A stretch of DNA of 64,000 nucleotides, from positions 1-64,000 of the forward strand of contig MCFH01000049.1 in the NCBI GenBank assembly GCA_002104945.1, read 5' to 3'. A program made the position numbers and the translations under genes. The notes beneath the pieces were generated by a model, which made no database searches, was not told the DNA's origin, and saw only the letters and a list, made by a program, of their open reading frames with translations. The number at the start of each line of letters is the position of its first letter. Position 1 is the stretch's first letter. The DNA is from Piromyces finnis finn (Eukaryota > Fungi > Neocallimastigomycota). Shown one piece after another: positions 36,901 to 64,000 of this stretch.

Positions 36901-39373
36901 TATATTATATTATATTATATTATATTATATTATATTATATTATATTATATTATATTATATTATATTATATTATATTATATTATATTATTTTAAAATGTAA
37001 TGAAAACTTACAAACAATGAAGTTGAGTAAGCTTTCCAATGGTATCAGGAAGAGTTGTTAAATTATTTCCGAATAAATCTCTATAAGATTATTTTAAATA
37101 AAAACTTTAATATTTATTTTAATTATTTTCTAAATCAAGAAAAACATACATTCTTTCAAGTTTTGTAAGATTTCCAATGGAATCGGGAAGAGTTGATAAA
37201 TTATTTTCTATCATCTCTCTAATATTTACAAATATTAAATATTAAATATTAATAATTGATTATAAAAATATTTATTTATTTTATAAAGTATTCATCAAAT
37301 TATATAAAACAAAATTTATACAGAGATGAAAGATTAGAAAAATTTCCAATGGAATCTGGAAGTGTTTCCAAATTATTATAATTTAAATACCTATAAAACA
37401 ATTATCAAAAAAAAAAAAAAAGAATAAATTAATACAATTCCAATTCTATTCAATAATAACATAAAATTTTATATTCTCTTTTTTTTTAAAAAAAAATAAA
37501 TCATAATTTAATTGTATTTTAAAAATTTATCACTTACAGTTGTTCAAGTTTTGTAAGCTTTCCAATGGTATCAGGAAGAGTTTTTAAATTATTATAATTT
37601 AAATACCTATAAAAGTATTTTAAAGAAAAGCATCAATATTAAAAAACTATTATTATTTTAATTATTTTCTAAATAAAAAAACATACAGTAAAGTGAGATT
37701 ACTAAGGTTTCCAATTGAATCTGGAAGTGTTTCCAAACTATTACTATTTAAACTCCTATAAAACAATTTTCAAAAAAAAAATGAATAAATAAATATTTTA
37801 GAATTTTTTAAAAAGAATGAAATTTCAATTCTATTCAATAATAATATAAATTTTTTATATTCTCTTTTTTTTTTTTAAAAAAAAAATAAATCATAATTTA
37901 ATTGTATTTTAAAAATTTAGCACTTACAGTTGTTCAAGATTTGTAAGTTTTCCAATGGTATCAGGAAGAGTTTTTAAATTATTTCCGTACAAAATTCTAT
38001 AAATTTATATAATTATATTAATAATTAAAAATCAATATAAATGTTAAAATAATTAATATTTAATATCTTTTTTTTTTTTTTTTTTTTTTTTTTGGAACAC
38101 ATACAACTCTTTTAGATTAACAAGATTTCCAATTTCAGAGGTAATTTTAGAAAAATCATTACCTCCTAAATTTCTTTTTAATTTATTTTTTAATTTTTAA
38201 AAATTATTAAAACTTTACAATGAAATTTTTTTTTCTCTTATTAATTTTATTATATATGCATTATCATACAATTTTTCAAGATTGGTAAAATTTCCAAAAA
38301 AACACGGAACCAATTCTAATTTATTATTTTGTATATCTCTTTAATTTTTTAAAAATAGAATTATTATACAATAAAATAATTTATTACTATTATTTCTTAT
38401 ATTTTTACTATAAATAATAATAATACATACAAACTCCAAAGTTCAGTCAAATTTCCAAATGAATCTGGGATGGAAGAAATTTCATTACTATTTAAATGTC
38501 TATTTTGTATTTTTATTTTAAAATAAGAAAATTAATAAAATATAATAATTATGATAATAATCATGTGATAAAAATGCACTTACAAATTCCATAAACCTCT
38601 TAATTCACCAATTTCATTAGGGATATTTTTTATATTGTTATAGCCTAAATCTCTATTATATTTTTTATATATAATTTAACTATTATTATTAATGTTTTTA
38701 TTTAATTTTATATTTAAATATTTAAAAAATAATTACTAACAAATATCTTAGATTAGTGAGTTTTCCTATTTCATTTGGAATATTGTTTATATCATTTTTG
38801 TATAAAAGTCTTTTTTTAATTTTTTTATTAAAATGAATATTTATTTACTAAAATTGATTTATAAATACTTTTATTTTATAATTAAAAAAAATATACAAAC
38901 AAATGTTCAAGATTTTTAAGATTTCCTATTTCAACTGGAATTTCAGTCAATTTATTTATAGAAAGATCTCTATATAAATTTATTTAAATAAATGAATAAA
39001 ATATAAAATATATACAGGTGGATAATTTAGGGTGATTCTCTTTAACTTATTTTAACTTTATTTACTTACAATTTTTTTAAGGTTGTTACATTAAAAATAA
39101 ATTCAGGAATCTCTAATAAGTCCTTTCTAGACATTAATCTTAATATTTTTTTTATTTTTTTAGTACTTTTGATAAACTACCAAGTAGATAAGAATAATAT
39201 ATTTATTTCATTATTAATAATATCAATACATACAATTCAATGGCATCTCCATTACTATCCTCTTTACAGTTATTATAATTTTCTACTTTTAGTTGTTCAC
39301 AAATTTCTTCGCATGAATATCCAAATGCTATTGTAATCAATAGCAATAAATTCATAATAAATTTTAATATCAT
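33908..39373 (-). CDS. Secreted LRR protein with Cys motif, Thr-rich linker and two C-terminal chitin-binding CBM18 (hevein) modules, 899 aa, 28 exons
   Basis: Exon 1 39234-39373 (signal peptide MILKFIMNLLLLITIAFG + Cys cap). 26 LRR exons: 39070-39138, 38901-38969, 38741-38809, 38584-38652, 38431-38499, 38270-38338, 38105-38173, 37928-37996, 37687-37755, 37538-37606, 37322-37390, 37150-37218, 37012-37080, 36758-36826, 36614-36679, 36451-36519, 36292-36360, 36124-36183, 35952-36011, 35785-35853, 35637-35705, 35498-35557, 35325-35390, 35153-35215, 35014-35076, 34837-34896. Last exon 33908-34727. All introns GT-AG phase 2; spliced length 2700 nt, stop-free. CBM18 motif CGKxIxSCxKGYCCSxYGWCGKSxxYC occurs twice. 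Confidence 0.88.
35524..35819. repeat. Near-exact 148-bp tandem duplication (one LRR exon-equivalent plus one intron)
   Basis: 35524-35671 vs 35672-35819, one substitution seen; 148 = 69-nt exon + 79-nt intron. Confidence 0.92.
36884..36987. repeat. (ATATT)n pentanucleotide microsatellite in an intron of the LRR-CBM18 gene
   Basis: About 21 perfect units. Confidence 0.95.
37322..37996. repeat. Older duplication of a two-exon LRR unit including its intron
   Basis: Exon pair 37322-37390/37538-37606 resembles 37687-37755/37928-37996 (LETLPDSIGN / LKTLPDTIGKLT), and intron sequence is shared (caattctattcaataata...aaatcataatttaattgtattttaaaaattta). Confidence 0.82.
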
Positions 39374-43965: not shown

Positions 43966-44659
43966 CTGATATATAGTAAACATTTTATTTTTTTATTTTT
44001 ATTTTATTTTAAAAATATTAAATACCTTTAATTTTTTTCCATATATTCGAAATAAATTTATTTATTAGTTGTAAAGTAATTGAATATTTATATATATAAA
44101 TATAAATATTTCAAATAATATCAAATCAGCATTTCCATATTACTAAAGCATCTTTTTTATATTAAACAAAAGTAGTATATATATATATATAAATATAAAA
44201 ATAAATAAATTCTAAATAAAAGTTATTATTTTCAATAATTTAAGATTAACTTTAAAAAAATACATTTAAATACATGTTAATTTTAAAAAGAAAAAAAAAC
44301 ACTATAAAGAATAATAAATAATAAATAGCTATTCTTTTTTAATTTTTCAAAATAAATAAAGTAACCAAAAAAGTTATTAAAATTAACCTGGTAAAGATAT
44401 GGAATATTTATTATAAACTTTAATTGAAATTAAACCATTTTTATTATTATAAAATTCCTTTATATATATAATTAAACTATTTAAATCTTATCGCTTTTAA
44501 AAAATAGATATTATCCATTTTTATTAATACTATATTATTTAAACATTGGACATTTTATTTAATTATTTAATAATTTTAGGATAAAATAAGTTTATTCCTG
44601 TATTAAGATACTTATCTTTCATTATAAATTATTTAATATTCTTTTATAGCATGTCGAAA
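43966..44659. mobile_element. ~695-bp non-coding dispersed repeat, copy 1 (inverted copy at 59816-60510)
   Basis: Near-identical reverse complement with sharp ends (ctgatatatag...gcatgtcgaaa). No ORF, TIR or TSD seen; mobility is inferred from dispersion. Confidence 0.6.
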
Positions 44660-44807
44660 TAATATATATATTTATAATTTATACAATCTTTGAATATTAA
44701 CATCTTATCATAATTTAATTATTAATTTGAAAATAAAAATTTTAATACTTTACATGTTTACATAGCTAAAAAAACTTTTTTTATTTTGGTGAAATTTTTG
44801 GTAAATC

Positions 44808-45386: not shown

Positions 45387-47858
45387 TTAATTTTCATCAT
45401 TTGAAGAATTATTTCTACTTTCTTCTATGGTAAAGTTTCTGTTTTTTGCTTTTAGATATATTAACACCACCACTGTAATAAATAATAGAATACATACTGA
45501 AATAATAATAATCGTTAAAAGAGGTGACCTTTTATCCTCTTCAGTTTCTAATAACGGATTATTTGATACATTTCTTAATATTTGAATTAAAAACGTAAAA
45601 TAATATAATTAATAATTTAACATCATAATAAAAAGAAATTTATATTAAAGTATATTTAAATTTATATTTTGATAGAGTAAAACTTATTTACAATTTTATA
45701 TCCTTTTTTTTTAATTCTTTTGGAATGGAACCACTTAAATTATTATCATTTAAGAGTCTATTTTGTTTTTCATATTAAAATAATATTAACAATAAAATAA
45801 AAATTGTAAATATATTATATTATATTTTGTTAACTTGTTCAATAAATAATAAAAACTTTTAATTACAAAGATTTTAAATTAGATAAATTTCCTAGCTCAG
45901 ATGGAATAGATCCTGATAATTTATTAAAAGATAAATCTCTATATTATACAAAAATAAGATATTATGCAAAAAAATATGTTATATTTTTTATTATTAATTA
46001 TCATTATTATTGTTGTTGTTGTTATTTTTATTTTAATTACAATTTTTCCATATTAGTTAGCTTTCCAAGTTCAGGAGGAATAGAATCTACCAGAAAGTTA
46101 TCGGATAAATCTCTATCATATTAAATTATACATTTAATATTAAATATAATAGTAAATATGTAATAATATTCATTTATTAAAATAAAGTATGTTAACATTC
46201 AGCAATTACAATGTTTTTAAATTAGACAAATTTCCGAGTTCAGAAGGTATAGAACCAATTAAATCATTTATATTAAGTTCTCTATTTTAAATAAAATAAT
46301 AATTATGTATATTACATAATAAGTAAATATTTAATTTTAAATAATAATGTTTTAAAATTTTTTAAATATATACAAATTCTTTAATTTTGATAATTTTCCA
46401 AATTCCCGAGGTATATGTCCAGATAAATAGTTATATGAAAAATCACTTTTTTATATTTAATAAAATATTAAGTATCAATCAATAAATGTATAGTATTTAA
46501 TATACTAATTAATATATTACATCAACTATAAATATAAATATTAAACCCATTTATTATTACATTCTTTCCAGATTTGATAAATTTCCAAGTTCGGATGGTA
46601 TTTTACCATCTATTAAATTTTGATCTATAACTCTTTTCAAATGAAAGTTATGGGAAATAATAAATTATTATTTAATAGTATTTAATTGATTGATATTTAA
46701 TTATTATTTTTAATTAATTACAATGTTTTTAAATTTGATAATTTTCCAAGTGAAGAAGGAATTGAACCTGTTATATTATTTCTAGTAATATACCTTTTTT
46801 TTTTTCGTATAAAGTATATAATAAATTAATGCCTTTTTCATAAACATGTAACATAAAATGATATCTAAATAGTTACATTTCTTTCAAATTTGTTAAATTT
46901 CCAAGTTCAGATGGCAAAGTACCATTTATACTTTTTCCATGCAAATATCTTTAATGAATTAAAAGTAAATTCAAAATTTAATAAACATAACAATAATAAT
47001 TAATATAAGAAATTTTAATAAATACAGTACATATATTCTAATTTTGATAAGTTTCCAAGTTCAGGTGGTATGGTACTAGATAATTTATCTCCATATATAT
47101 ATCTATTGAAATGTACAAAATATGTTATTATAAATATAAAAACATATTTGATGATTAATAAAATAATATAATTAGGTAAAAAAGCATTTACAAATATTCT
47201 AGATTTGTTAAGTTTCCGAGCTCAGATGGTATAGAACCTTTTAAATTTTTTCCACTTATACTCCTGTTTCCAAATAAAAATATATATAAATATAAAAATC
47301 ATTTTTTAATAGATATAATATTTATTATGTATTATAAAGCATTACAAATATGTTAGATATGTTAAATTTCCAAATTCAGGTGGTATGGATCTATTTAAAC
47401 AGTAAAAATATATTTGAATATTTTATTAATAAATATTATAAAATCTTGAATATATAATGATCATTTATATAAAAAGTAATATTAGTAATATTAAAAAAAA
47501 AAAAAAAAAAACGTATTACTTTTCATTTGTAATATCTTCAACTTCATCAGAATTTGAATAACCAAAATTAAAATTTCTTTTATTTAATAAAAATTGTTAT
47601 TAATACTACTAATAAAAAATATTTACAATTATAAATATCTAATAATGAAATAAATATTTTAATATTAATTCATTACATTCTAATTATATGACCATCATCT
47701 GAACATATAATATTCTTGTGTATACAACAATCAAATGATAGATCTATATTTAATAATTTATTTACTATTTCACATTCTTTATTAATATCTTTTTCAGCAA
47801 GTATAAATTTTATTATAAAAATGAAATTAATCAATAAAATAAATATATTCATTATCAA
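45387..47858 (-). CDS. LRR receptor-like protein 1: signal peptide, Cys cap, 11 LRR exons (plant-type 24-aa xLxxNxLxGxIP), TM helix, short tail; 394 aa, 14 exons
   Basis: Exons 47677-47858, 47520-47576, 47346-47390, 47192-47263, 47031-47102, 46877-46948, 46722-46793, 46561-46632, 46374-46445, 46210-46281, 46041-46112, 45867-45938, 45692-45757, 45387-45573. All GT-AG phase 2; 1185 nt, stop-free; TM LLTIIIISVCILLFITVVVLIYL followed by KAKNR. Confidence 0.9.
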
Positions 47859-48197
47859 AAATATTTTTATACTATTTAAAAATAATAAAATGAAAGGTAT
47901 AATAAAAAAAATCCTACTAAATCTATTATTTTTTAAAAATACTTTAATAACTTTTATAGGACTATTAATAAAAATTAAAAATAAAATTTTCCATCCGTGT
48001 ATGGAATAAGGTTCAATGATAAATTGTAATTATTTATGTTTTTAAGAAAAGTATTAATTTTCTTTTTAATGAACTTTAAATTATTTAATTTTATTTTGAA
48101 TTATGTTAGCTCTGTTTAATTGTACTATTTTTCTATTATTTAAACTATTTGAAATTATCATTTCTCCCGATAGCATATGGCTAACAATACAAAATAC

Positions 48198-48420
48198 TAT
48201 AGAAATACGCTCTATATAGAATTAATAAGAATTAATGAATAATTTTCCTATTTCTAATAATTAAAGATACATAATTCTATATGGACTATTATAAAAAATA
48301 TAACATTTAATTATTAGCTATTTTTGATGTTTCCTACATTTATATACATTATTTAATATTTTAATACAATAATTACTTATATAATGAACTATAATTTTTA
48401 TTATTTTATATTTCATATCT
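48198..48420. repeat. ~220-bp direct repeat upstream of RLP1, second copy at ~58555-58790 upstream of RLP3
   Basis: Shared tagaattaataagaatt(a/g)atgaat...ctaataattaaagatac...attattagctatttttgat...ataatgaactataatttttattattttat. Confidence 0.75.
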
Positions 48421-49082
48421 ACTAATTATTAGAATGACTCAATTTAATAATTAAAGCCCATTAAATAAGAATAAATATATTATATTTATTGTTTTTAATC
48501 AGCATAGATTAAAAGGTTCAGTTCCTTTACATAATATGTAAATTGACATATTTAATTATGTTTTAATAAAAGTTTTATACTAATTTTCTATGCTATTTTA
48601 AATTATAATTTTAATATATCCTTTTTTTCTCAAGTATCATTTAAAAAAAAAACAAATAATTCATCTTAAATATTGCTATAAAAATTAGTTATTTAAAATA
48701 TATTCTCTCTTTATTTAAGCTTTACATAATTATTGTTATTTATTTTATTGAGCTTTTCTATTAGAATTGGACTATTACAGAAACAATTTATTAAAAATAA
48801 TGTTTTCGTTCGTTGTGTTAATTAGAATGTCAGATAATGGCATGCACTCATAGAGATTATATAATGTATAGATAGGGTGAAATGTATTAAAATTGGTAAT
48901 CTTGTTGTGTTTTATTTATATTTCCATTAATTTTTATAAATATACAATTATTACATGAAATAATTTTTGTTTATCTTATTATATTATATATATATATATA
49001 TCAAATAAAATTAAACAGTATGACAATTTTAGTTAATATTTTTATACACTAAATTGAAAATAAAATGAATTATTTGAATTTA

Positions 49083-49113
<31 letters not shown>

Positions 49114-51066
49114 TATGATTTGTTATTTTGTCAACTTTTGATATTGAAGTACCCTTATAAAATAATATTTTATTATATTATTAAATTATCATTAAAATAA
49201 CAATATTATTATTATTATTATTATTATTATTAAATTCTTTTTAAATATATTTTCTTTTATGTTTGAATGAGGTTTTTTCGATTGTGTAAATATTTGAAAC
49301 GATATTAGCCCTTTCAAGTGATTAAAAAATAGGAGGTGTATTTGAAAAAGAATTATTATTTATTCGTATTTACCAAAGTAACATATCCTAATCCTAATTT
49401 ATAGGAGAAAATCTCAAGTGTAAAACCAGAAAATAAAACATGGTAAATTAGTTTTTATCATGATTTAGACATTAATTTAGTTTACATTGGAGATTAAATT
49501 ATATTTTTATCTGGGTGAAATGTTTAATACTTTCATAATTAAACTTTCATATACAAAAACAAATAAATTTTTAGAATAGAAGAAAAAAGAAAATTACTTT
49601 CTTAACAAAGAACTTTTAATATTTTCTAAAAATAATAATATTTTTATAATATTTATTTGTATTTGCTTTTACTTAATAAACAACTATTATTAATAGAAAG
49701 CTGAAATAATGACATGGCTTCAATTAAATATGTAATATAAACAGTTTATAAAAATTAAAAAAAAAAAACCTCAACATTTCATTATTAAATTTTATTTTTA
49801 ACAAAGAAATTATATATTAATTTTTAAAAAAAAATAAATAATAGAGATAAAGAAATAAACATTGTAAGTAATAGTATTTAAAGTATTTAAATAAAATTTT
49901 ATTTATTATTGACTGTGATATTTTTTAAATTATATTATATCTACATATTGACATAATTTAAAAAATACGAATTATTAGATATAAACAATATATTTAATAA
50001 ACTTGTTTTTATATAAGTATATAAGTAGAGAATTAGAAATTATTAATTAAAGATATTAACTTATTTAAATGCTTTAGATTTTAAATTTTTTGATTAGTTA
50101 TTTTTTTGTATATTTCAATTAAGATTTTGGAAAGAATATATTAGAACCTGAAAGTTATCGTATATTAAAGATTTAAAATTTAAATGACTAAGTTGTAAAC
50201 TTTATTTAAGATATAATAGTTTCTTGAGTCTTGAATGTTATATCATTGTTCTAGTACATAAAAAAAATTAAAATTGTTTATATGTTGGTTTATTCATACT
50301 AACAATAAATAAACAATTCAAATATGGATTCTAGTCAGTCCTAAAAAATAATTTATATCTTATATTATTAATATTATTTTTTCCTCTAAATTATATATAA
50401 TATATATGATATATACATCATGTTAAGTTTATATCTTAATTTATTAATAAATTTTCAATAAAATATAATTTCCTACATTTTTAATCCAATTAAAGTTAAT
50501 AAGAGTATAAAATTTTTATTTTATTTTTTTTGTTGTTGGAATTATTACATTTTTTGTGGAAGATGTTATTAAATTTCCCTTTTTTTTTTTTATGAAATTA
50601 ACTTGTGTGGAATTCAAATTAATTAATATATTAATGATATAATTGGTATTTAATAAAAGTGGAATCAATTTATTATTTCTTTAATAATAATACTAATTTT
50701 ATTCAATTTTTATTTTTTTTATTTCAAATTATAAGTTTATATTTATTATAGAAAATATATTAATATTAATAGTTTTCTTGTTGAATCATATATTATATAC
50801 TAATTAAGAAAAAGTAAGTATTCTCAAAATTTAATAAATACTCCAATATAAAGAAAAGAAAGAAAGGAGTGTTAATTTTAAATTTATTGATTTGATTTAT
50901 TTTATTTATTTAATATATAATATTTACTTTAATTTATAGTTTATTGAAAGTTCTATTTTAAAATAAAATAAATAAAAATTATTTTATTTATATTTTATTC
51001 ATTTAAATTATTAATAATAATTGATAACATATTTAAAAAGATGTATATTTGTAGATCTATTTGCTT

Positions 51067-53617
51067 TCATGAACAATTAGATACTTTAACATTTTTTAGA
51101 GTATTGCCAATTGTACTAGTTTTATTTCCATTATCATAGATTTTCCTTTTAGTTTTTAGATATATTAATAATATTACTATAGCAAGAACTAAAATACATA
51201 TAATTGCAATAATTATATATGAAATTGATGAATCATTATCTTCAGTTTCTAATAACGGATTATTTGATATGTTTCTTAATTTATAAATTTAAGTTAATAC
51301 ATGTAATTATTAATTTAAAAAATGATAAAATATATATTAATAGATTAATAGTATAGTTTATTTACAATTTTATTTCCATTTTTTTTAATTTTTTTGGAAT
51401 TGAACCACTTAAGTTATTTTCTGCTAAATTTCTATAAATTATACAAAGTAAAAAAAAGTTATATGTTACTTATAACATTTTATTTCATATTATTTTAATT
51501 AAAAAAAATTTAATTACAAAGATTTTAAATTTGATAAATTCCCAAGTTCAGGTGGAATAGATCCTGATAATTCATTATGAGCCAAGAATCTTTCAATTAT
51601 AAAAACAAATTATTAAATATAGAAATTATTATTATTATTATTATTATTATTTTAACTACAGTTTTTCTAATTTAGATAGTTTTCCTAGTTCTGGTGGAAT
51701 AGAATCTACTAAATAATTACTACTTAAATCCCTAAAAGTTAAAATTTAATAATAAAGAAATTATTAATAATTATAATTATTTTAAAAAATTATAGAAATA
51801 TATGACAATTAAAATTACAAGGTTTTTAAATTAGATAGGTTTCCAAGTTCAGGAGGTATAGGACCAATTAAATCATTTAAATCAAGATCTCTGTTTTAAA
51901 TAAAATTAAAATTTGCATGAAATAATATTAAAATAAGAATTATTATATAAATAATGTTATTTTAATTTATTCTTTTTTTTAATACTTACAAATTTTTTAA
52001 TTTAGATAATTTTCCTAGTTCTGGTGGTATTTGACCAGATAACGTATTATTGGAAAAGTCTCTATTTTACATGTCATTTGAAATATTAATAAAAGTAAAA
52101 AATTTATTAATAATTAACATATTATTAATAATTACTATAATATTTATTTAAAAATCTTATTAATTAATAAAAAAGCGAAAGTATTACATTCTTTCTAATT
52201 TTGATAAATTTCCAAGTTCAGGTGGTATTTCACCACTAATAGAATTTTGATCTATTACTCTTTTCAATTAATAATAACGTAAATGGTGGAATTATTAAAC
52301 TATTATTAAATAGTTTTTAATTAATTACTATTTATTAAATATTTTTTATTACAATGTTTTTAAATTCGATAATTTTCCAAATGAAGAAGGAATTGGTCCT
52401 GTTAAATAATTTCTTGAAAAATACCTATTATAAATAGAATTATAGATAAATTAATAATAGAATATAATAATACCTTAATACTTTTTTTCATTTTTCTTTA
52501 ATAAATATTTAATTAATAAACATTACATTTCTTGCATATTTGATAAATTTCCAAGTTCAGATGGTATAGTACCATTAATATATTTTCCATGCAAATATCT
52601 ATTATTAAAATTAAAAAATAATTAAAATCATAGGGATTATTACAAATATAATAAATGTGATAAACATAATTACATTTTATTAATATAAATAATTTAATAA
52701 CATGTACATATAAAATAATTTTTTTAAATTCCCAATTTCAGGTGTATAGAAGTAACCAATTTATCTCCATATATATATCTTTTTAAAAATTAAAGTATTT
52801 ATTGTAATTTTAAAGTTAATATAAAAAATAGATATAAATAATAATGTAATAATCAAATAGAAAATTTTAAAACAATTACAAATATTCTAAATTTGTTAAA
52901 TTTCCAAGTTCAGGTGGTATAGAACCTCTTAAGTTTTCTCCTTTTATACTCCTATTTTCGAATAAAAATATAAATATTATATATTATAAATATAAAATTG
53001 AATTATATTTTATTATATATTATATATTATATATTATTTATTATAAATTTTACAAGTATGTTAAGTTTGTTAAATTCCCAAGTTCAGATGGTATGCATCT
53101 ATTTTAATCATTTAAAAAATATAAAATCTTAATATAATAATAAATTATATATATAATAATATTAATATAGAAATAATTAATTAATTACTACCTATATTTA
53201 TCATTTGTAATATCATCTTCTCCATCAGTATATTTAATATCTAAGTTTCTTTTATTAACATGAATAATAAAGATGAATAAAGAATATTAAAATTAAAAAA
53301 TATAAATCACATCACTTTATAAATTTTAAATATTGTTGAATATTAAGATTGGATATTTAACCGATTAAAAATATGCTTTAATATTTTTTAAAAAAATATC
53401 ATAATTAACAAAATATTAAAATTTTGATTTATTACATCCTCGTAATATGACCATCATTTGAACATAAAATATCTCCATGTGTACAACAATCAAATGATGG
53501 ATCTTTGTTTAATAATTTGTTTACTCCTTCACATTCCTTATTAACATTGGTTTGTGCATAAATGAATTTTACTATTAAAATGAAATTAATTAAAAAAATA
53601 GGTATATCCATTTTCAA
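51067..53617 (-). CDS. LRR receptor-like protein 2, 14 exons; exon 5 carries a 1-bp deletion (pseudogene, exon-skipped isoform or sequence error)
   Basis: Exon 1 53436-53617 (182 nt, as in RLP1 and RLP3); exon 2 53192-53248; same exon series. Exon 5 52708-52778 is 71 nt instead of 72. TM ISYIIIAIICILVLAIVILLIYL; stop at 51067. Confidence 0.78.
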
Positions 53618-54615
53618 TGAATATTTTTATTATTTAAAAAAAATAATATTTTTTTTTTTTTTTGTTAAGTAAATATATATATTGATATATTTTTTGAATT
53701 TATAAAAAAAATCTAGTTAAGTTTAATAATTTAAACTATTTTTAAGACCTTTAAAATAATTTTTATCCATATTTTATAATTCTGTTTTAATAAAATAATT
53801 AAAAAAATATAATAAATTTAAATAATCATATATTATAAATTATGAAAGTAGGTTAAATTTTGACTATTTATTTTTATTAGCAAATACATAAATATTTAAC
53901 TACTTATTCATTTCCAAATATAATATATCATAAAATGGTATATTATAAAATATCATAAATAAGCCTTTAAAATAAATCTTAATTTTAAATAAAATAAATT
54001 AATATATTTAAAAATTGTTATATAATTCAATAATAAATATTATAACCTATCAAAAATAGATATTTCTTTTTTAAAATATATCATATATATACATATCTAG
54101 TGTAAGTTAATTTTTTAATAAAATCTTTTTAAGAAATAAATTAAGCAATTTAAGTTTTGAAAAATAAAAACTTTAATTCATGGAGATTATTTACTTTCTT
54201 GAGCAATTAGATAGTATAGTTTTTCAATAGTTCGATTACAATATAGGATTAATAAATAAAAATAATAAAAATCAATATGATTGCTTTTCTTTTAGTAAAT
54301 AAGTACAAAGCAAAAATAATTAAAAATATTAAAAAAAAAGGATTAAAATACATTTTTTATTAAAATTTTAATTTTTTTTAAATTATTGAATAAAAATATA
54401 TAATAAAATGTTATATACAAAGTATTAAATTTAATATCAATTGTAAATCATTATTACTTAATAATTAATAACTTTAAATTATAATTATTTTATTAAATCA
54501 TATTATAATTAATATAAAAAGTATACTTTCATTTAATAAGAATCATTATAATTAATACTATTAATCAATATCTATGTTCATTAGCAATAACCATTTAGTA
54601 TTTTCCAATTAGCAA

Positions 54616-57292
54616 TTAGACAGAATGTACATTTTGGTTATTAGATATTGAATTACTTTTTCTATTTCCATAAATTTTCTTTTTAGTTTTTAAATATATT
54701 AATACTATTACTATAATAAGTATTATGATGCATATTGCTATTATAATAATAGTTACAAGTGATGAATCATTATCTCCAGTATTTAATAATGGGTTATTTG
54801 ATACATTTCTTAATATTTAAATTTAAAGTTATAAATAAAAATTATTATTATTTAATATGCTTATATATATTTTTCCTAAAATATATTTATATTTATATTA
54901 ATAATAAAGATTAATTACAATTTTATATCCATTTTCTTTAATTTTTTTGGAATTGAACCACTTAAATTATTGTCTGCTAAATTTCTATTATTTATACCAA
55001 AAAAAAAAAAAATTATAATAAATATCAAATATTATAGGTTACATTTTATTATACTATAAATATATCTTTATTACAAAGATTTTAAATTAGTTAGATCTCC
55101 AAGTTCAGGTGGAATAGACCCTGTTAATTTATTATCAGATAAGAGTCTTTCTATAATAATAATAAAAAAAAAGGTATTTAATAGAAGAATTATTGTTTTT
55201 GTTTTTATTAATATTATTATACATATATTATTGATTATTATATATTAACTACAATTTTTCCAATTTAGATAATTTTCCAAGTTCAGGAGGAATAGAATCT
55301 ATTAAATAGTTATCAGATAAATCCCTAACATGTTAAAGTGAGCATTTATTATGAATAAAATTAATAATTTTTATATTTATTTATTTATTATTATTTTACA
55401 AAATAATAATAACATATTGTTAATTAAAATTACAGTGATTTCAAATTAGAGAGGTTTCCGAGTTCAGGAGGTATAGAACCTATTAAATTATTTAAGTCAA
55501 GTTCTCTATTATAGTATTAATGAAATTTGTATACCATGATAACATAATATGAAATATTATATATATATATAAAATATTTATATTTAGCATAGTTTTATCA
55601 TTATTATTTATTATTTAAAATAATTTAAATAGAAAACGATATTTAATGTTTTTAATGATTACAAATTTTTTAATTTAGATAATTTTCCTAGTTCTGGAGG
55701 TATATGACCGGATAAAGTGTTATTTGAAAAATCTCTATTTTATATTTAATTTTAAATATTATAAAAAACTAATAAAAAGAAAATATAGTAATAATAATAT
55801 ATAGTTTTATTAATCGTATTTATTAATATCTACATTCTTTCTAATTTTGATAAATTTCCAAGTTCAGGTGGTATTTCACTACTAATAGAACCTTGATCTA
55901 TAACCCTTTTTCAAATAAAAACAATGAAAATAATAAAAATATAAAATTATTATAAAAAAGAATTTAATATCTTTTTTAATAATTATAGCTTATTACTTAC
56001 AATGCTTTTAAATTTGATAATTTTCCAAACGAAGAAGGAATTGGACCTGTTAAATAATTTCTAGTTATATACCTATTATAAATAAAAATATAGATAAATT
56101 AATAATAAAAATATAATAATACCTTTTTTTCATTTTTCTTTAATAAATACATAATAAATAAACATTTACATTTCTTGTAAATTTGATAAATTTCCAAGTT
56201 CCGGTGGAATAGTACCACTTATATTTTTTCCATGCAAATGCCTATTATAAATTAAATTTAAGATTGAATTATGAATATTTATTATAATAGTATATATAAT
56301 TTCAAGCCATTACATATATGATAATCTTGATAAATTTCCAAGTTCTGGTGGTATAGTACTAATTATCTTTTCTCCATGTATATATCTATTAGAAGTATGA
56401 AATATATGAATGCATATAAAGCAAAAAAAATATAAATATATGATTATTATAACAAATATAAAAAACATATATTATGATAACAATAATATAATAAAATTTA
56501 TTATTATTTATAATAATTACAAATATTCTAGATTTGGTAACTTTCCAAGTTCAGGTGGTATAGAACCTTTTAAATTACTTCCAACAAAAGTTCTATTTTG
56601 AAATTAAAAATAAAAATATTATTATATTTATACATTTACATTATATATATTTATTGTATATTATAATAATTACAAAGATGTTAAATATGTAAAATTTCCT
56701 ATTTCTGGTGGCAAATAGCTTTATAAAATATTTATAAAGAAATTTAATTATATTTTAATAAAATATTCAAATATTTTTAATAATTAAATAAAAAATATAA
56801 AATAGTTAATACTTGTATATTTCTTTAGTAAAGTTTTCAACATCATCTTCATAATTATAATCAAATTTTACATTTCTATTCACAAAGGCAACAATATAAG
56901 TATAACAAAAAATATTTATCAAAAAATAAATTAATTTATAATATTTTATTTTCTTTTAATGATATTTTTGAAGAATATAATAGGAATTATTTTAAGTAAA
57001 ATGGTATCTAATGTAAAATTTATTGATTTAATTATAAATTTATTTTATTTTTATATTTTCCTAGTGTTTTATATAAAAAAGTATTTGATATATAAATATC
57101 AATTCATTACAAGCTAAAAACATGACCATCAACTAAATATTGAACACCTGGCTCTTCACAACAATTATTTGATTGATTGTCTTTTCGATATAGTCTATTT
57201 ATTACAACACATTCTTCATTAACACCGCTTTGTGCTGAAATGAGTTTTATTATAAAAATTAAATTAGTTATAAATAAAATAGTAATATTCAT
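54616..57292 (-). CDS. LRR receptor-like protein 3, 14 exons, apparently intact
   Basis: Exon 1 57111-57292, linker exon of 63 nt, 45-nt exon, nine 72-nt LRR exons, 66-nt exon, TM exon (LVTIIIIAICIIILIIVIVLIYL-KTKKK); stop at 54616. Confidence 0.88.
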
Positions 57293-57619
57293 TATTATTT
57301 TTTTTATTTAAAAAATAACTGGAAATAAAAATATTTTTAGAACCATTACCATATATGTAAATCCAATAAAGTTAATTTAAATTAAACTTTTAACAAAAAA
57401 AGTTTAAAAACTTATTCAATTTTTTAATTGTATATGGAAAATGGAAAAACAAATTTAAATAATAGTTTTATTTTAAATCATTATGATAGGATTCAACTAC
57501 AAAATGTATTTATAAAAGCTTTAAGAGGTTTTAATTTTCTTAATATAAATAATTTCATTAAAGATGTGAACATTTATGGACACATAATTTTATTTATCCA
57601 TATCATATATTTATAAACA

Positions 57620-57746
57620 CACGTGACTAATTTATAAAAACATAAACATGTATTAAAAATGTTGTAAACGTAATGTCTATGTGTTGTATGTTGTAGAGAA
57701 AGTTATTTTTTATTTATTTTAATTTATTTTATATGGTCACATGACC
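57620..57746. promoter_or_regulatory. Two E-box-type bHLH motifs upstream of RLP3
   Basis: CACGTGAC at 57620-57627 (GTCACGTG on the minus strand) and GGTCACATGACC at 57735-57746, ~330 and ~450 bp upstream of the ATG. Function is inferred. Confidence 0.3.
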
Positions 57747-57768
57747 TGACATCTCACTCTATAACTGT

Positions 57769-58312
57769 TTTTTTTTTTTTTTTTTTTTTTAACGGCATCA
57801 AATATTTTAAACTTTATTATTAATTTAATTAAAATTATAATACATGTAATAAAAAATTAAAAATAAAAATAAAAATAAAAAAATATGTTTAAATAAACAC
57901 AAATAAATAAAAATTGGGTATAATGTATTCTAGTAATTTTAATTAAAGTAAGAAAGCCACTATTATACTAAAGTATAATAATTGTATTTGACTTCCAATG
58001 GGACACCGAAGCCAAAGATCAAAATTTTGTCATGGAACAAAATTATGATCTCCATTGGTTGCGCTGGCCCTCCTGGCCTGTCTTACTGTTTCTTCAGCAT
58101 TGACGCTCTTGGATGTTGCTTCAAACCTTTTGAACATTGACCATTGCTGGCCAATAGCAAAAGGCATGATTTTGGTTAGAAGTTCCGCGGTTACCGTTAA
58201 GAATGGTGTTCCTTCGTTAGTACCAGATTGAATCTGACGCTTACAAAGTTCTTTCCATTCCCTTGAATTGTAATTAATATTGTTAAAACTTCTTCCCCCA
58301 AGAAGGAATTTA
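57769..58312 (-). mobile_element. 5'-truncated non-LTR retrotransposon 3' end with poly(A) tail and 13-bp TSD
   Basis: Poly-T at 57768-57790; ACTCTATAACTGT duplicated at 57756-57768 and 58313-58325; GC-richer ORF end NSREWKELCKRQ...NGDHNFVP*. Confidence 0.88.
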
Positions 58313-59144
58313 ACTCTATAACTGTAATATTTACGATGTAACTTTTTCTCTTTGTTAACCTTATTAATAAAATTATTTATTAATTAAATTTATTTCACAA
58401 AAGATAACATAAATTTCAGTATTTTAATTATTTACTGCTTTTATGAACTAACCCTATTTAATTTAGCTATTTTTCAACTATTTCTACTAATTTAATATTA
58501 CCATATCTTCTTTTATAATAATGCATAACTTTTCTCTTATACTATACATAATATTATAGAAATATGTTCTATAGAATTAATAAGAATTGATGAATGATTT
58601 TCCCATTTCTAATAATTAAAGATACAAAATTCTATATGTACATGGACTATTATAACTTTTAATTATTAGCTATTTTTGATATTTCCTACATTTTTATACA
58701 TTATATAAGATTTTATTATATTACGTATACATTAATTACTTATATAATGAACTATAATTTTTATTATTTTATATTTATACTTTATATTTTTATTTACTTC
58801 TAGTGTGTTTCTTTCCCTCTATACAATATATAAAAGCTTATCACTTCTTTATTATGAATTATGATTGCATTTCTTATTATTTAATATTTTAGTTTATATT
58901 TTATTATTATTTCATTTCAATTATCAATTGGTATTCAATTTATATATATATAAATTAAATAATTAATACTTTTAATTTGTTATTTTCTTTGAGTATTTGT
59001 AAAAGCCATTTTAATTATTAAGATATTATTATAATATCTTATGTTAAATATTGATATGTTATATCAATTAAAATAAAATGACAATGCTCTATATAATTAT
59101 TAATTATATTTCCAAAAAAATCGAATACTTTTTTATTTAAAATT

Positions 59145-59650
59145 TTTTTTTATTTTTTATTTTTTATTTTTTTTAATGGCATCAAATATTTTTAAAATTT
59201 ATTAATTTAATTATAATACATGTTAAAAAAAACAAAGTTAAAAATAAAAAAAAATATGTTTAAATAAACACAAATGAGTAAAAATTGGGTATAATATATA
59301 ATGTATTCTAGTAATTTTAATTAAAGTAAGAAAATCATTATTATTATAAAGTATAATAATTGTATTTGACTTACAATAGGACATTGAGTCAAAGATCAAA
59401 ACTTTGTCATGGGATATAATTATGATCTCCATCGGTTGGGTTGGCCCTCTTGACCTGTCTTACTATTTCTTCAGCATTGACTCTCTTGGATGTTGCTTCA
59501 AACCTTTTGAATATTGCTGACCAATAATAAAAGATTTTGGTTAGAAATTCCGCTATTTGAAAAGGTTCATCTGTAGAAACATTAGGATCGTTGAGGTTTG
59601 CTGAAAGTATTTGGAATTTATTATGATTGAGAATAGATTCCTTTTCCTTA
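59145..59650 (-). mobile_element. Older copy of the same LINE 3' end with degenerate poly(A)
   Basis: Aligns with 57791-58190 (KRFEATSKRVNAEEIVRQVKRANPTDGDHNYIP*); no clear TSD. Confidence 0.78.
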
Positions 59651-59815
59651 ATACATTTTAATCTATTAAAAATATTTTTTTATATCTTGTTGAAAATATA
59701 AGTTGTAATGTCAATATAAATATATTTAATAAAATAAATTACATAAGAAAATATAATGATAATTAATTAAAAGAATGAATTATTAGTAATAATATAGCAT
59801 TTCCCCTATTTTTTT

Positions 59816-60510
59816 TTTCGACATGCTATAAAAGAATATTAAATAATTTATAATGAAAGATAAGTATCTTAATACAGGAATAAACTTATTTTATCCTAAA
59901 ATTATTAAATAATTAAATAAAATGACCAATGTTTAAATAATATAGTATTAATAAAAATGGATAATATCTATTTTTTAAAAGCGATAAGATTTAAATAGTT
60001 TAATTATATATATAAAGGAATTTTATAATAATAAAAATGGTTTAATTTCAATTAAAGTTTATAATAAATATTCCATATCTTTACCAGGTTAATTTTAATA
60101 ACTTTTTTGGTTACTTTATTTATTTTGAAAAATTAAAAAAGAATAGCTATTTATTATTTATTATTCTTTATAGTGTTTTTTTTTCTTTTTAAAATTAACA
60201 TGTATTTAAATGTATTTTTTTAAAGTTAATCTTAAATTATTGAAAATAATAACTTTTATTTAGAATTTATTTATTTTTATATTTATATATATATATATAC
60301 TACTTTTGTTTAATATAAAAAAGATGCTTTAGTAATATGGAAATGTTGATTTGATATTATTTGAAATATTTATATTTATATATATAAATATTCAATTACT
60401 TTACAACTAATAAATAAATTTATTTCGAATATATGGAAAAAAAATTAAAGGTATTTAATATTTTTAAAATAAAATAAAAATAAAAAAATAAAATGTTTAC
60501 TATATATCAG
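59816..60510. mobile_element. ~695-bp dispersed repeat, copy 2 (inverted relative to 43966-44659)
   Basis: Near-identical reverse complement of 43966-44659. Confidence 0.6.
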
Positions 60511-60841
60511 ACTAGGAAGAGAATACACTTCTTGTATTTATTATTTAATTTGAAATATTGCATTATATTAAGTGATAATACATATTGATATAATAATAAA
60601 TAAAAATATTAAATATATATATAAAAATATAAATATATAATAAAATATAATAATTATTTAAATTGCATAAAAGTTCAATGAACTTTTTGCAACTTGTACT
60701 ATTGGTCCCTCCCTAATAAATTAAATGAAATAAAAAAGAAGTAACATCAGGTATGATAATGTGGTGTCCACTAAACTCTCCCATGAGTTCATAATATTTT
60801 CATTCAAAGAAATATTAACATTGAACCCTGTGTACGGAACA

Positions 60842-61322
60842 TTAGGAATGTTCATTTTTTAAATCAATAGGAACACAATTGTTAGTAAGAAAGCTCTTGA
60901 AAGAGAATAAAGATTTTTGAACTTTTTTGTACATATTAGATAGAATAGGAGTCAGAGAAGGATCTTCATCGAATGGGATTCCAAGATAAGTATAGTAAGA
61001 AACCTTTAGAATCGAGTACATATCGATGTAAAATGTTTGGTCTACATAACTAGAGGATCTATTAAAGTTGATAGGTTTAACAACAATAGTTGCACACTTA
61101 TTTATTCCGAAAGACATTTCATTTAAGCTATGTTTTGTAACATCAAATGCAAGATTTTCATAATGTTCAGCCCATCGTTTTAGCTGTTCTTGTGGAGAAA
61201 ATAAATCTCTACCATTCTTGTCCTTAATGGTAGAAACATGAGAGAATGAATAACTTGGTTTGGCAAGTTTTTTAAGGCTTTTCCAACCTTGTCTAAAACT
61301 TTTGTCAATAAAGTGTTTACCT
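60842..61322 (-). mobile_element. Non-LTR retrotransposon ORF fragment: pre-RT linker fused to the last RT motif
   Basis: One open frame: WKSLKKLAK...IKDKNG...EQLKRWAEHYENL (endonuclease-RT linker pattern) then MSFGINKC...YTYLGIPF (terminal RT motif). No YADD motif. Confidence 0.78.
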
Positions 61323-61376
61323 TATTAATATATATAAACAAATATTAAATTATTTCAACATAAAATAAACATACAT

Positions 61377-61474
61377 TTTTTTTTTTTTTTAACGGCATCA
61401 AATATTTTTAAACTTTATTATTAATTTAATTAAAACTATAATACATATTATAAAAAACAAAAATTAAAAATAAG
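61377..61474 (-). mobile_element. Very short (~100 bp) LINE 3'-end insertion with 10-bp TSD
   Basis: Poly-T 61376-61390 followed by aacggcatcaaatattttaaac as in the 57791 copy; AAACATACAT at 61367-61376 and 61475-61484. Confidence 0.82.
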
Positions 61475-61985
61475 AAACATACATATCATTCTGTTTATCA
61501 TAACTTCTAGAACAATGCATTCTTAAATGTAAATAAATAAAGTTGATAAACTTTAGATTACAAAAATCAAACTTAAAATTTACTAATAAAAATTTAAAAA
61601 AAAAAAAAAAAATTTTTAACATTTTTAAAATAAAACAATTACATATATATAATTATTTCTTTTAGAAATAATCATATATGATTAATTGTTTTATTATTTA
61701 CTAAAATAAATAAAATTGACATATATTTATTTATAAAAGAAATAAATGTAGTGGTAAAGTATTAATAAATATGAAAATGTATGATTCATATCATTCTGTT
61801 ATTGCTGTGATTGAATATAATTAGTCAATAATAATTAAATATTAAAATGTCTTTTTTTTTAGTAAAGTTTACACTTTGTATAATATTACTTTCATATGAT
61901 TCTAATAATTTATATTACAATAAATTTTGAAATATTTATTAATTATTTATATATAAAGTTTTAAATATACAATAATTGAGGAAAT

Positions 61986-64000
61986 TTATCTTCCTGTGCA
62001 ATTAGATATTTGAACATTTTTTAGATTACTAGGCATTGTACTATTTCTATTTCCATTTTCGTAGATTTTTTTTTTGGTTTTTAAATATATTAATACTATT
62101 ACTATAATAAGTATTATAATGCATATTGCTATTATAATAATAGTTACAAGTGATGAATCATTATCTCCAGTATTTAATAATGGGTTATTTGATACATTTC
62201 TTAATATTTAAATTTAAAGTTATAAATAAAAATTATTATTATTTAATATGCTTATATATATTTTTCCTAAAATATATTTATATTTATATTAATAATAAAG
62301 ATTAATTACAATTTTATATCCATCTTCTTTATTTTTTTTGGAATTGAACCACTTAAATTATTGTCTGCTAAATTTCTATTATTTATACCAAAAAAAAATT
62401 ATAATAAATATTAAATATTATAGGTTATATTTAATTATACTATAAATATATCTTTATTACAAAGATTTTAAATTAGTTAGATCTCCAAGTTCAGGTGGAA
62501 TAGACCCTGTTAATTTATTTTCAGATAATAGTCTATTTTATATAAAAGTAAAATATTAACTATGAAATGGTTGTTACTAGTCTATTATTATTAATATAAA
62601 ATAAATTACAATTTTTCCAATTTAGACAATTTTCCTAGCTCAGAAGGAATAGAATCTACTAAATAATTACTAGATAAATCCCTAATAAATCAAATTAAGT
62701 TTAATTACAAAACATATAAATATTTTAAATTAATTAAAACAAAAAATATTGATAATTAATAATTACAAGGTTTTTAAATTAGCCAAATTTCCAAGTTCAA
62801 TAGGTATGGATCCTATTAAATCATTTGAATCAAGTTCTCTATTTAAAATAAAAATATAATTTGTGTGAAATAATATCAGAATAAAAAAATTTTATATATA
62901 ATTATATTATCAAATATCATTTAGAATGTTTATATATAAATAATAATATTTTAATTTATTATTTTTTTTTATATTTACAAATTCTTTAATTTCGATAATT
63001 TTCCTAGTTCTGGAGGTATATGACCGGATAAAGTATTATTAGAAAAATCCCTATTTTATATTTCGTTTTAAAATAATATATTAATTAATAAGTAAAAGAT
63101 AATAATAAATAATAATTATTATTATTTTAATATTAAAACGATTATAATTACATTCTTTCTAATTTCGATAAATTTCCAAGTTCAGGTGGTATTTCACCAC
63201 TTAATTCATTTTGATCAACAACACTTTTACAAATAAAAATAATAAATTTAATAAAAATAATAAACTATTATAAAACAGTTTTTAATTAATTACATTGTTT
63301 TTAAATTTGATAATTTTCCAAATGAAGAAGGAATTGGTCCTGCTATAGAACATCTTGAAAAATACCTATTATAAATAGAATTATAGATAAATTAATAATA
63401 ATAGATTATAATAATACCTTAATACTTTTTTTTTCATTTTTCTTTAATAAATATTTAATAAACATTTACATTTCTTGTAAATTTGATAAATTTCCAAGTT
63501 CAGATGGTATAGTACCATTAATATATTTTCCATGTAAATATCTATTACAGATTAAAATAAAGTATTATTCTTTTTATGAATATTCTACATAATAATATAA
63601 TATAATATAATATTAATAAACAATTTTAATAAATACATATAAAACAATTTTGGTAAATTTCCTAGTTCAGGTGGTATTGTACTAGTTAATTTATCTGCAT
63701 ATATATATCTGTTTAATAATTAGAAATAATAGTAATGTAAGTAAAAAAAACATATTTGAACAATAATAAGAATTATTAATAATTACAAGTATTCTAAATT
63801 TGTTAAATTCCCTAACTCAGGTGGTATGGAACCTCTTATATTATCTCCACATATACTCCTATTTCCAAGTTGTAAATATAAATATTATAAATATTATAAT
63901 AATTTTTTGCCACAAATATCATAATTGTTACATAATTACAAATATGTTAAATTAGTTAAACTTCCAAGTTCAGGTGGTATATAGCTGTTTAAAATTAAAT
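61986..64000 (-). CDS. LRR receptor-like protein 4, 5'-partial (exons 1-2 lie beyond the window)
   Basis: Exons 3-14 present from ~63940-63984 down to the TM exon; stop at 61986; all readable exons in frame, GT-AG phase 2. Confidence 0.86.

Follow-up and report, generated by a model that had tools for sequence, protein, structure and literature searches.

A recombining tandem array in Piromyces finnis, probably encoding lineage-specific leucine-rich repeat surface proteins under purifying selection

The first 64,000 nucleotides of contig MCFH01000049.1 of the gut fungus Piromyces finnis (assembly GCA_002104945.1; the window, below) were analyzed together with the following 20 kb of the same contig (C177 in our numbering). 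The window is extremely AT-rich (13-22% G+C), and a motif scan of its 64 kb found the plant-type leucine-rich repeat (LRR) motif GxIPxELGxLxxL in four clusters, on the minus strand only and between 45.4 and 64 kb only. Gene models were built with a cluster-and-score script in which candidate exons bounded by AG and GT were scored against reference exon peptides, with two exons added manually. The result is a tandem array of six intact genes on one strand, g1 to g4 within the window and g5 and g6 just past its end:

g1, 47852-45387, minus strand: 14 exons, 392 amino acids, open frame, all introns GT-AG and phase 2; exons 47852-47677, 47576-47520, 47390-47346, 47263-47192, 47102-47031, 46948-46877, 46793-46722, 46632-46561, 46445-46374, 46281-46210, 46112-46041, 45938-45867, 45757-45692, 45573-45387.
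g2, 53611-51067, minus strand: 13 exons, 375 amino acids, built like g1 without a working exon 5; exons 53611-53436, 53248-53192, 53098-53054, 52951-52880, 52598-52527, 52424-52353, 52259-52188, 52061-51990, 51890-51819, 51731-51660, 51589-51518, 51431-51366, 51274-51067.
g3, 57292-54616, minus strand: 14 exons, 398 amino acids, final Cys of the cap lost; exons 57292-57111, 56875-56813, 56718-56674, 56592-56521, 56385-56314, 56241-56170, 56072-56001, 55905-55834, 55734-55663, 55505-55434, 55324-55253, 55146-55075, 54984-54919, 54808-54616.
g4, 64717-61986, minus strand: 14 exons, 402 amino acids, cut by the window end; exons 1 and 2 beyond the window on the same contig, 64717-64545 and 64132-64070; exons 3 to 14 inside it, 63984-63940, 63858-63787, 63708-63637, 63541-63470, 63365-63294, 63223-63152, 63050-62979, 62838-62767, 62681-62610, 62532-62461, 62375-62310, 62199-61986.
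g5, contig 70614-67409, minus strand: 405 amino acids, beyond the window.
g6, contig 75941-72847, minus strand: 472 amino acids, beyond the window.

Exon sizes are nearly fixed across the array: exon 2 (E2) has 57-63 nt, E3 has 45 nt, E4 to E12 have 72 nt each and E13 has 66 nt. In all six genes the frame is open and every splice site is GT-AG; the 72-nt exons end in TT, and a Leu, Ile or Met codon is completed by the first base of the exon that follows, so that every intron is phase 2. An annotated partial model exists for a redundant copy of g2 on contig C93, namely ORX34885.1 (P0001, below), recorded as 'L domain-like protein [Piromyces finnis]'.

The exons correspond closely to parts of the predicted protein. 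E1 encodes a hydrophobic leader followed by a small cap with Cys at positions 27, 42, 43 and 50, the last of which is missing in g3; in all six genes the N-terminus is hydrophobic over 18-20 residues and is followed by A-Q or A-E, a putative signal peptide assigned by reading rather than by a predictor. E2 and E3 together form an irregular first repeat, E4 to E12 each encode one 24-residue repeat with the consensus LxxLxLxxNxLxGxIPxxLGxLxx (seen in all six genes in the exon alignment), and E13 encodes a shortened repeat with a basic stretch at its end. E14 begins with a half-repeat (LNVSNNPL), followed by an acidic or Ser-rich stalk of about 8 residues and a 23-residue hydrophobic helix, the acidic stretch before this transmembrane (TM) helix reading, for example, ETEEDK or NTGDND. 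After the helix come a KTKKK-type stop-transfer signal and a basic tail rich in Asn, Ser and Lys, 21-57 residues long (21 amino acids in g1); no motif of PPxY type is seen in any of the six tails. Each protein thus totals about 11 plant-type 24-residue LRRs, nine of them on 72-nt exons. The LRR region from E4 to E13 is uninterrupted, with no island (loop-out) domain seen, and no GxxxG motif was seen when the TM stretches were read. The sixth gene has two features of its own: its exon 1 (contig 75636-75941) carries a Gln/Asn/Glu-rich tandem repeat of INTEQ-like units, about 45 residues, between the putative signal peptide and the cap, and its tail is longer, with SSGSKQ repeats.

Pfam, PDB-sequence and fold searches were made with single exons or with the database proteins P0001 and P0018, the latter a full-length annotated paralogue of the g1-g6 family on contig C156. 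Single repeat exons matched LRR_1 at E values of 0.02-0.05. P0001 scored 39.6 bits against LRR_1 and 29 bits against LRR_8; in P0001 and P0018 the cut-offs of LRR_1, LRR_8 and LRR_4 were passed, LRR_14 was also among the Pfam matches, and LRR domains were the only ones seen. Cap exons gave no Pfam match, and P0001 and P0018 likewise gave none to LRRNT_2 (PF08263); alignment of the cap to LRRNT_2-bearing caps with hhalign gave a weak match (probability 37%, P=3.5e-4, 21 columns) covering the DCCxxxxIxC...GH[IV] part. Matches of E14 were of TM type only and all below threshold. A profile search found no TIR_2 match anywhere in the genome, and none of the 150 Pkinase matches listed, of 171 in all, lies on C177.

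The repeats of g2 matched best, among PDB sequences, the ectodomains of plant LRR receptor kinases (GSO1, MIK2, FLS2, ERL and PEPR1, with E down to 2e-95), and the kinase-less TMM and RXEG1 were also among the matches. The AF2 model of P0018 has a mean pLDDT of 84, rising to 91-99 over the repeats, and shows a leader helix at residues 2-20, the cap, a solenoid, the TM helix and a disordered tail; each repeat has strands at x3-x5 and x12-x14 and a short helix at x17-x21. Foldseek searches with this model returned MIK2, GSO1, PEPR1, PGIP, a plant ice-binding LRR protein and SERK2 as best matches.

Several claims of the first-pass annotation, which was made from the letters of the window, are upheld by these models. 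It had described at least four same-strand genes with mostly 72-nt LRR exons, of which there are four in the window and six in the array, and had proposed for them the architecture of plant LRR receptor-like proteins (RLPs). The leader, Cys cap, plant-type LRRs, single TM helix and short tail, with no kinase or TIR found, support that proposal, and both the gene models and the paralogue's predicted structure point to a build resembling plant LRR-RLPs. It had also stated that each exon is most like the exon of the same number in the paralogues. This is true of all 72-nt LRR exons (53/53), for which the best nucleotide match is the same-numbered exon of another gene; mean identity is 0.84 between same-numbered exons vs 0.64 between exons of different number. 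The correspondence implies that the repeats diverged before the genes were duplicated and have not been homogenized across positions.

Variation is unevenly spread within the repeat. In the LRR register used here, residue 1 of an exon is L4, and residues 23 and 24 are x2 and x3. Mean pairwise amino acid difference is highest at x10 (0.50), x12 (0.43), x17 (0.42), x8 (0.37), x23 (0.35) and x14 (0.34), and low at x2 (0.09), x3 (0.19) and x18 (0). Synonymous divergence is about 0.3 in each exon half, so that the conserved IPxELGxLxxL half reflects constraint on the protein and not homogenization. In LRR proteins the region of the xLxxN strand forms the concave, ligand-binding surface. The first-pass annotation held that this strand varies and that the other half is nearly fixed, and it quoted strings from exons 4, 7 and 12. 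Those strings are verbatim correct and come from among the more variable exons; the strand is nearly invariant in exons 9 and 11, and exon 8 varies more, chiefly at N9 and x10. The part of the claim that concerns rate stands: the quoted strand (x5 L6 x7 x8 N9 x10) evolves about twice as fast as the rest, with omega (the ratio of nonsynonymous to synonymous rates) at 0.23 vs 0.11 elsewhere (likelihood-ratio test, p=4e-6; GY94 F3x4), and the first half of the exon has an omega of 0.22 vs 0.09 for the second half (p=2e-9). Its identification with the binding face needs a qualification: the six quoted residues differ from the structural concave set, in that x2 and x3 belong to that set and are conserved within the 'fixed' half, and x10 lies outside the sheet.

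Selection was analyzed with our own maximum-likelihood (ML) implementation of GY94 with F3x4 codon frequencies, on 253 codons from the six sequences, in three blocks each with its own tree. Overall omega is about 0.14. By class of position (F3x4), omega is 0.085 for the core, 0.19 for the concave set (x2, x3, x5, x7, x8), 0.28 for the flank (x10, x12, x14) and 0.13 for the convex x positions. Fixing the concave omega at 1 was rejected, with twice the log-likelihood difference (2dlnL) at 110; under F61 and equal frequencies the concave omega was 0.24 and 0.56, and a value of 1 was again rejected (2dlnL of 84 and 13, respectively). The NG86 method gave 0.45 for the concave set, with a bootstrap interval of 0.23-0.89. 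Concave positions did not differ in omega from the other x positions (p=0.73). Among the site models, M2a did not improve on M1a (2dlnL=0), and M8 fitted slightly better than M7 (2dlnL 6.4), yet its extra class lay at omega=1.00; across M1a/M2a and M7/M8 for the six paralogues, no site class had an omega above 1. Twenty sites fell in the neutral class, three at x10 and two each at x7, x8, N9, x12 and x17, with the rest elsewhere; 14 of the 20 are in x5-x14. The fastest positions, x10, x12 and x14, flank the concave sheet.

DIVERSIFYING selection on the concave face is not supported: the answer is no. The faster first half of the repeat is a matter of weaker constraint rather than of positive selection. 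A comparison of M7 with M8 was the check that the first-pass annotation had put forward for its claim of a diversifying repertoire. Neither this comparison nor the omega values by class of position showed an excess of nonsynonymous change at concave-face sites, an outcome which that annotation had itself named as refuting the claim.

The paralogues are 73-87% identical across exons and introns, and trees of different blocks disagree, joining g5 with g6 over E3-E7 at 100% support, g2 with g3 over E8-E10, and g4 with g5 over E11-E13. The 5' part of g5 is g6-like (29 vs 68 differences) and its 3' part g4-like (15 vs 49; Fisher 9e-9). The switch falls in intron 7 of g5 (contig 68639-69040), which has grown to 402 nt by a long AAT microsatellite. 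In g4, a g2-like 5' part is joined to a 3' part like g3 and g5 (p=3e-4 and 2e-8). A 0.7-kb orphan copy of the promoter and exon 1 of g5 (contig 65279-65984 vs 70330-71054, 97% identical) stands upstream of g4, not followed by any LRR exon. A further relic lies within g2:

Dead exon 5 of g2, 52708-52778, minus strand: 71-nt relic with a 1-bp deletion relative to exon 5 of g4, giving a frameshift and a stop.

The same stretch is identical in the redundant contig C93. All exons being symmetric (phase 2), skipping the dead exon keeps the frame of g2. From the trees and breakpoints, g1-g6 appear to be mosaics that arose by unequal crossing-over. Such mosaics, together with the orphan exon 1, the dead exon and the disagreement of trees between blocks, are what birth-and-death evolution with unequal crossing-over leaves behind, a mode common to many ordinary gene families.

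An inverted pair of 704-bp sequences, 99% identical, lies at window 43966-44668 (plus strand) and 59807-60510 (minus strand). The genome holds no other true copy, all further matches being to the redundant contigs. About 15 kb apart, the pair brackets g1-g3, and the block could be inverted by way of it.

The array belongs to a larger family. A profile search of the contigs with the cap exon found 55 places in the P. finnis genome, a number in which redundant contigs, the lone duplicate of g5 exon 1 and a few matches interrupted by stops are counted. Of these places, beyond the array itself, about 20 lie at 208-272 kb of C177, on the same strand, six at 253-268 kb of C196, and others on C156, C197, C226, C91 and C184. 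Contigs C93 (20.6 kb) and C75 (22.2 kb) are collinear with about 33-53 kb of C177. They differ from it by 0-1 mismatches and by 45-96 gap positions, mostly single-base indels that break exons, which identifies them as redundant unpolished copies; for the same reason they were rejected as alleles for a polymorphism test. ORX34885.1 derives from one such indel-broken copy (C93).

Outside P. finnis, Piromyces sp. E2 (OUM65897.1), models of Pecoramyces ruminantium and gut metagenome contigs (L009-L012) have cap exons 43-57% identical to that of g1; these relatives share the one-repeat-per-exon build, and none is a close orthologue of g1-g6. Neither a word search with g1 exon 1 nor a metagenome scan with g2 exon 1 turned up a close orthologue of g1 or g2; the near relatives of P. 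finnis are poorly sampled. Querying protein representatives with g1 exon 1 yielded mainly fragments the length of an exon, bacterial and plant LRR proteins dominated the word searches made with P0001 and P0018, and the cap alignment varied too much to serve as a metagenome scan query. The repeat itself, GxIPxELGNLxNL, occurs in hundreds of intron-free bacterial and metagenomic proteins, with repeats 45-60% identical; 'plant-specific' therefore names this repeat type and does not describe its distribution.

Other features of the window and its flank include a repeated element and three further LRR genes:

Repeated-element fragment, 60509-61124, no strand assigned: between g4 and g3, with a second copy at contig 71143-72305, between g6 and g5.
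LRR gene, 8246-10414, plus strand: intron-free.
LRR gene, 16701-18664, plus strand: intron-free.
LRR gene, 33908-39373, minus strand: multi-exon, the last large exon encoding a Thr-rich stalk and two chitin-binding modules (Chitin_bind_1, E=9e-16).

The copies of the repeated element are 85-93% identical and hold open frames of 91-158 amino acids. The fragment at 60.5-61.1 kb was considered as a piece of a reverse transcriptase and dropped, its open reading frame at 60842-61117 having no Pfam match. The two intron-free genes carry a different LRR type, with 23-residue repeats (LPKEIGNLxNL), and have no signal peptide; that at 8246-10414 matches LRR_14 at E=2e-86 and LRR_8 at E=8e-53. In the window they represent a second LRR family, unrelated to that of g1-g6.

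Taken together, we consider it probable that g1-g6 are a recombining, constrained tandem array of a lineage-specific family of LRR-TM surface proteins under purifying selection. Each gene would encode a type-I membrane protein with a cleavable signal peptide, a small Cys cap and a curved solenoid of about 11 LRRs, after which come a short acidic stalk, a single TM helix and a basic tail of 21-57 residues, rich in Asn and Ser and with no known domain. The family would expand and reshuffle through tandem duplication and unequal crossing-over between paralogues, helped by a one-repeat-per-exon, all-phase-2 build in which any exon junction stays in frame; mosaic genes, an orphan first exon and a skippable dead exon would be the outcome. 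Constraint appears weakest on the first strand and following flank (x5-x14) of each repeat, as expected if paralogues have drifted or become sub-specialized in what they bind, and not of an arms race. The ectodomain presumably binds an extracellular partner. With no catalytic domain in the tail, a signal could be relayed only by way of a partner protein in the membrane; adhesion or recognition without signaling would be the alternative. The most likely function is thus extracellular binding, with signaling, if there is any, through a partner.

Some points weigh against this reading. The codon analysis used home-made code on a small data set of mosaic sequences, with branch lengths fixed from M0 and a free scale factor for each of three partitions, and could miss positive selection that is recent or confined to a few sites. 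In the closest pair, g5 and g6 over E3-E7, there are four amino acid changes and no silent change at concave codons, too few to test. The predicted structure is that of the paralogue P0018 and not of g1-g6. The annotated partial model P0001 omits exon 2, and both exon 2 and the skipping of the g2 relic are deduced from conservation. Three sequencing runs that may be of RNA hold 7-15% of the sampled words.

Two further readings of the family's role seem rather unlikely to us. One is that these are structural or adhesive surface molecules with no part in signaling, serving attachment to plant fiber or microbes or the organization of the wall, as PGIPs and LRR-extensins do. It agrees with the lack of any signaling domain found, with the short tail, disordered in the P0018 model, and with PGIP and LRR-extensin being among the sequence and fold neighbors, but true receptors are among the same neighbors. 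The nearby LRR gene that ends in chitin-binding modules indicates that this genome does join LRR solenoids to wall-binding parts, yet g1-g6 themselves carry no carbohydrate-binding or wall-anchoring module. The other, about as doubtful, is that gut fungi have RLP-style perception, in which dozens of kinase-less LRR receptors would act with a separate kinase, in the membrane or the cytosol, and sense plant or microbe ligands through specialized paralogues.

Improbable on the present data is the claim of the first-pass annotation that the array is a diversifying repertoire of immune type with variation focused on the binding face, shaped by positive selection on the concave surface as in plant Cf-9/Cf-4-type RLPs or R genes. 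The architecture is RLP-like, tandem arrays with unequal crossing-over are found in plant R and RLP clusters too, the x5-x10 strand evolves twice as fast as the rest, and 6 of the 20 near-neutral sites are at canonical concave positions (e.g. x7 of exon 4, S/K/V/C/R/R). However, concave omega was between 0.19 and 0.56, a value of 1 was rejected under all three ML frequency models and lies above the NG86 upper limit of 0.89, concave positions behaved like other exposed positions, with x2 and x3 among the most conserved x positions, the site models gave no class above 1, and the fastest class of positions lies on the flank. That the genes are decaying pseudogenes or gene-prediction artifacts of very AT-rich DNA, as the dead exon of g2, the lost cap Cys of g3, the orphan exon 1 and the fragmentary annotated model of the redundant g2 copy might suggest, is scarcely credible for six frames open across 13-14 exons each in DNA of 15% G+C, where stops are frequent, with all splice sites canonical, an overall omega of 0.14 and synonymous divergence (about 0.3) above nonsynonymous in every site class.

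The array offers a clean example of how a one-repeat-per-exon, single-phase build permits recombination and exon loss without breaking the frame. No description of the P. finnis LRR-TM family was found in the literature searched, and its annotation reads only 'L domain-like protein'; it is an ordinary but undescribed, lineage-specific family. A 2010 survey of 101 eukaryote genomes by Soanes and Talbot counted five proteins with LRRs plus one TM helix in all the fungi examined (PMC2939053), and a 2026 paper reports a few LRR kinases in chytrids (PMC13618815). Against that background, a cap exon at 55 places, among them two large tandem arrays that share a contig, usefully corrects how surface recognition in fungi has been seen. 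RLP-style perception, if true, would give a sizeable repertoire of LRR receptors to a kingdom in which none has been reported (PMC2939053). In a Pecoramyces transcriptome, an 'LRR receptor-like' gene was among those down-regulated in co-culture with a methanogen (PMC6414434). LRR proteins are not mentioned in a paper on gut-fungus membrane proteomes.

Among the known systems closest to the g1-g6 proteins are the kinase-less LRR-RLPs of plants (TMM, RXEG1 and the Cf-9/RLP23 type), with which these proteins share a putative signal peptide, a Cys-containing cap, 24-residue LRRs, acidic stretch, one TM helix and a short tail, as well as tandem clusters with unequal crossing-over. They differ in having only about 11 repeats, with no island domain and no GxxxG seen in the TM helix, in a cap that falls below Pfam LRRNT_2 with a weak profile match (37%), in showing no sign of positive selection on the concave face, and in belonging to a different kingdom. 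An island domain and a GxxxG motif in the TM helix are typical of SOBIR1-dependent RLPs, and are not universal. The ectodomains of plant LRR receptor kinases (MIK2, GSO1, FLS2, PEPR1, ERL1/2 and SERK) have the same repeat consensus and two strands per repeat, whereas no kinase domain was seen for the fungal genes among the matches listed; ERECTA-family and SERK genes are also built with one repeat per exon. PGIP (1OGQ) and the plant ice-binding protein 6W78 resemble the fungal proteins in having about 10 plant-type repeats and in fold (TM-score by target 0.47-0.54 for the P0018 model), but are secreted and soluble, without the TM helix and tail of g1-g6. Bacterial and metagenomic proteins (Planctomycetota, Chloroflexota, Gemmatimonadota and unassigned contigs) share the GxIPxELGNLxNL repeat and differ in their caps (ALxALY...CxWxGVxC), in C-terminal FN3, Big_2 and PPC domains, and in having neither introns nor an exon joining signal peptide and cap. 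The gut-fungus relatives, those of Piromyces sp. E2 and Pecoramyces ruminantium among them, differ from the array in their cap exons, only about half identical to that of g1.

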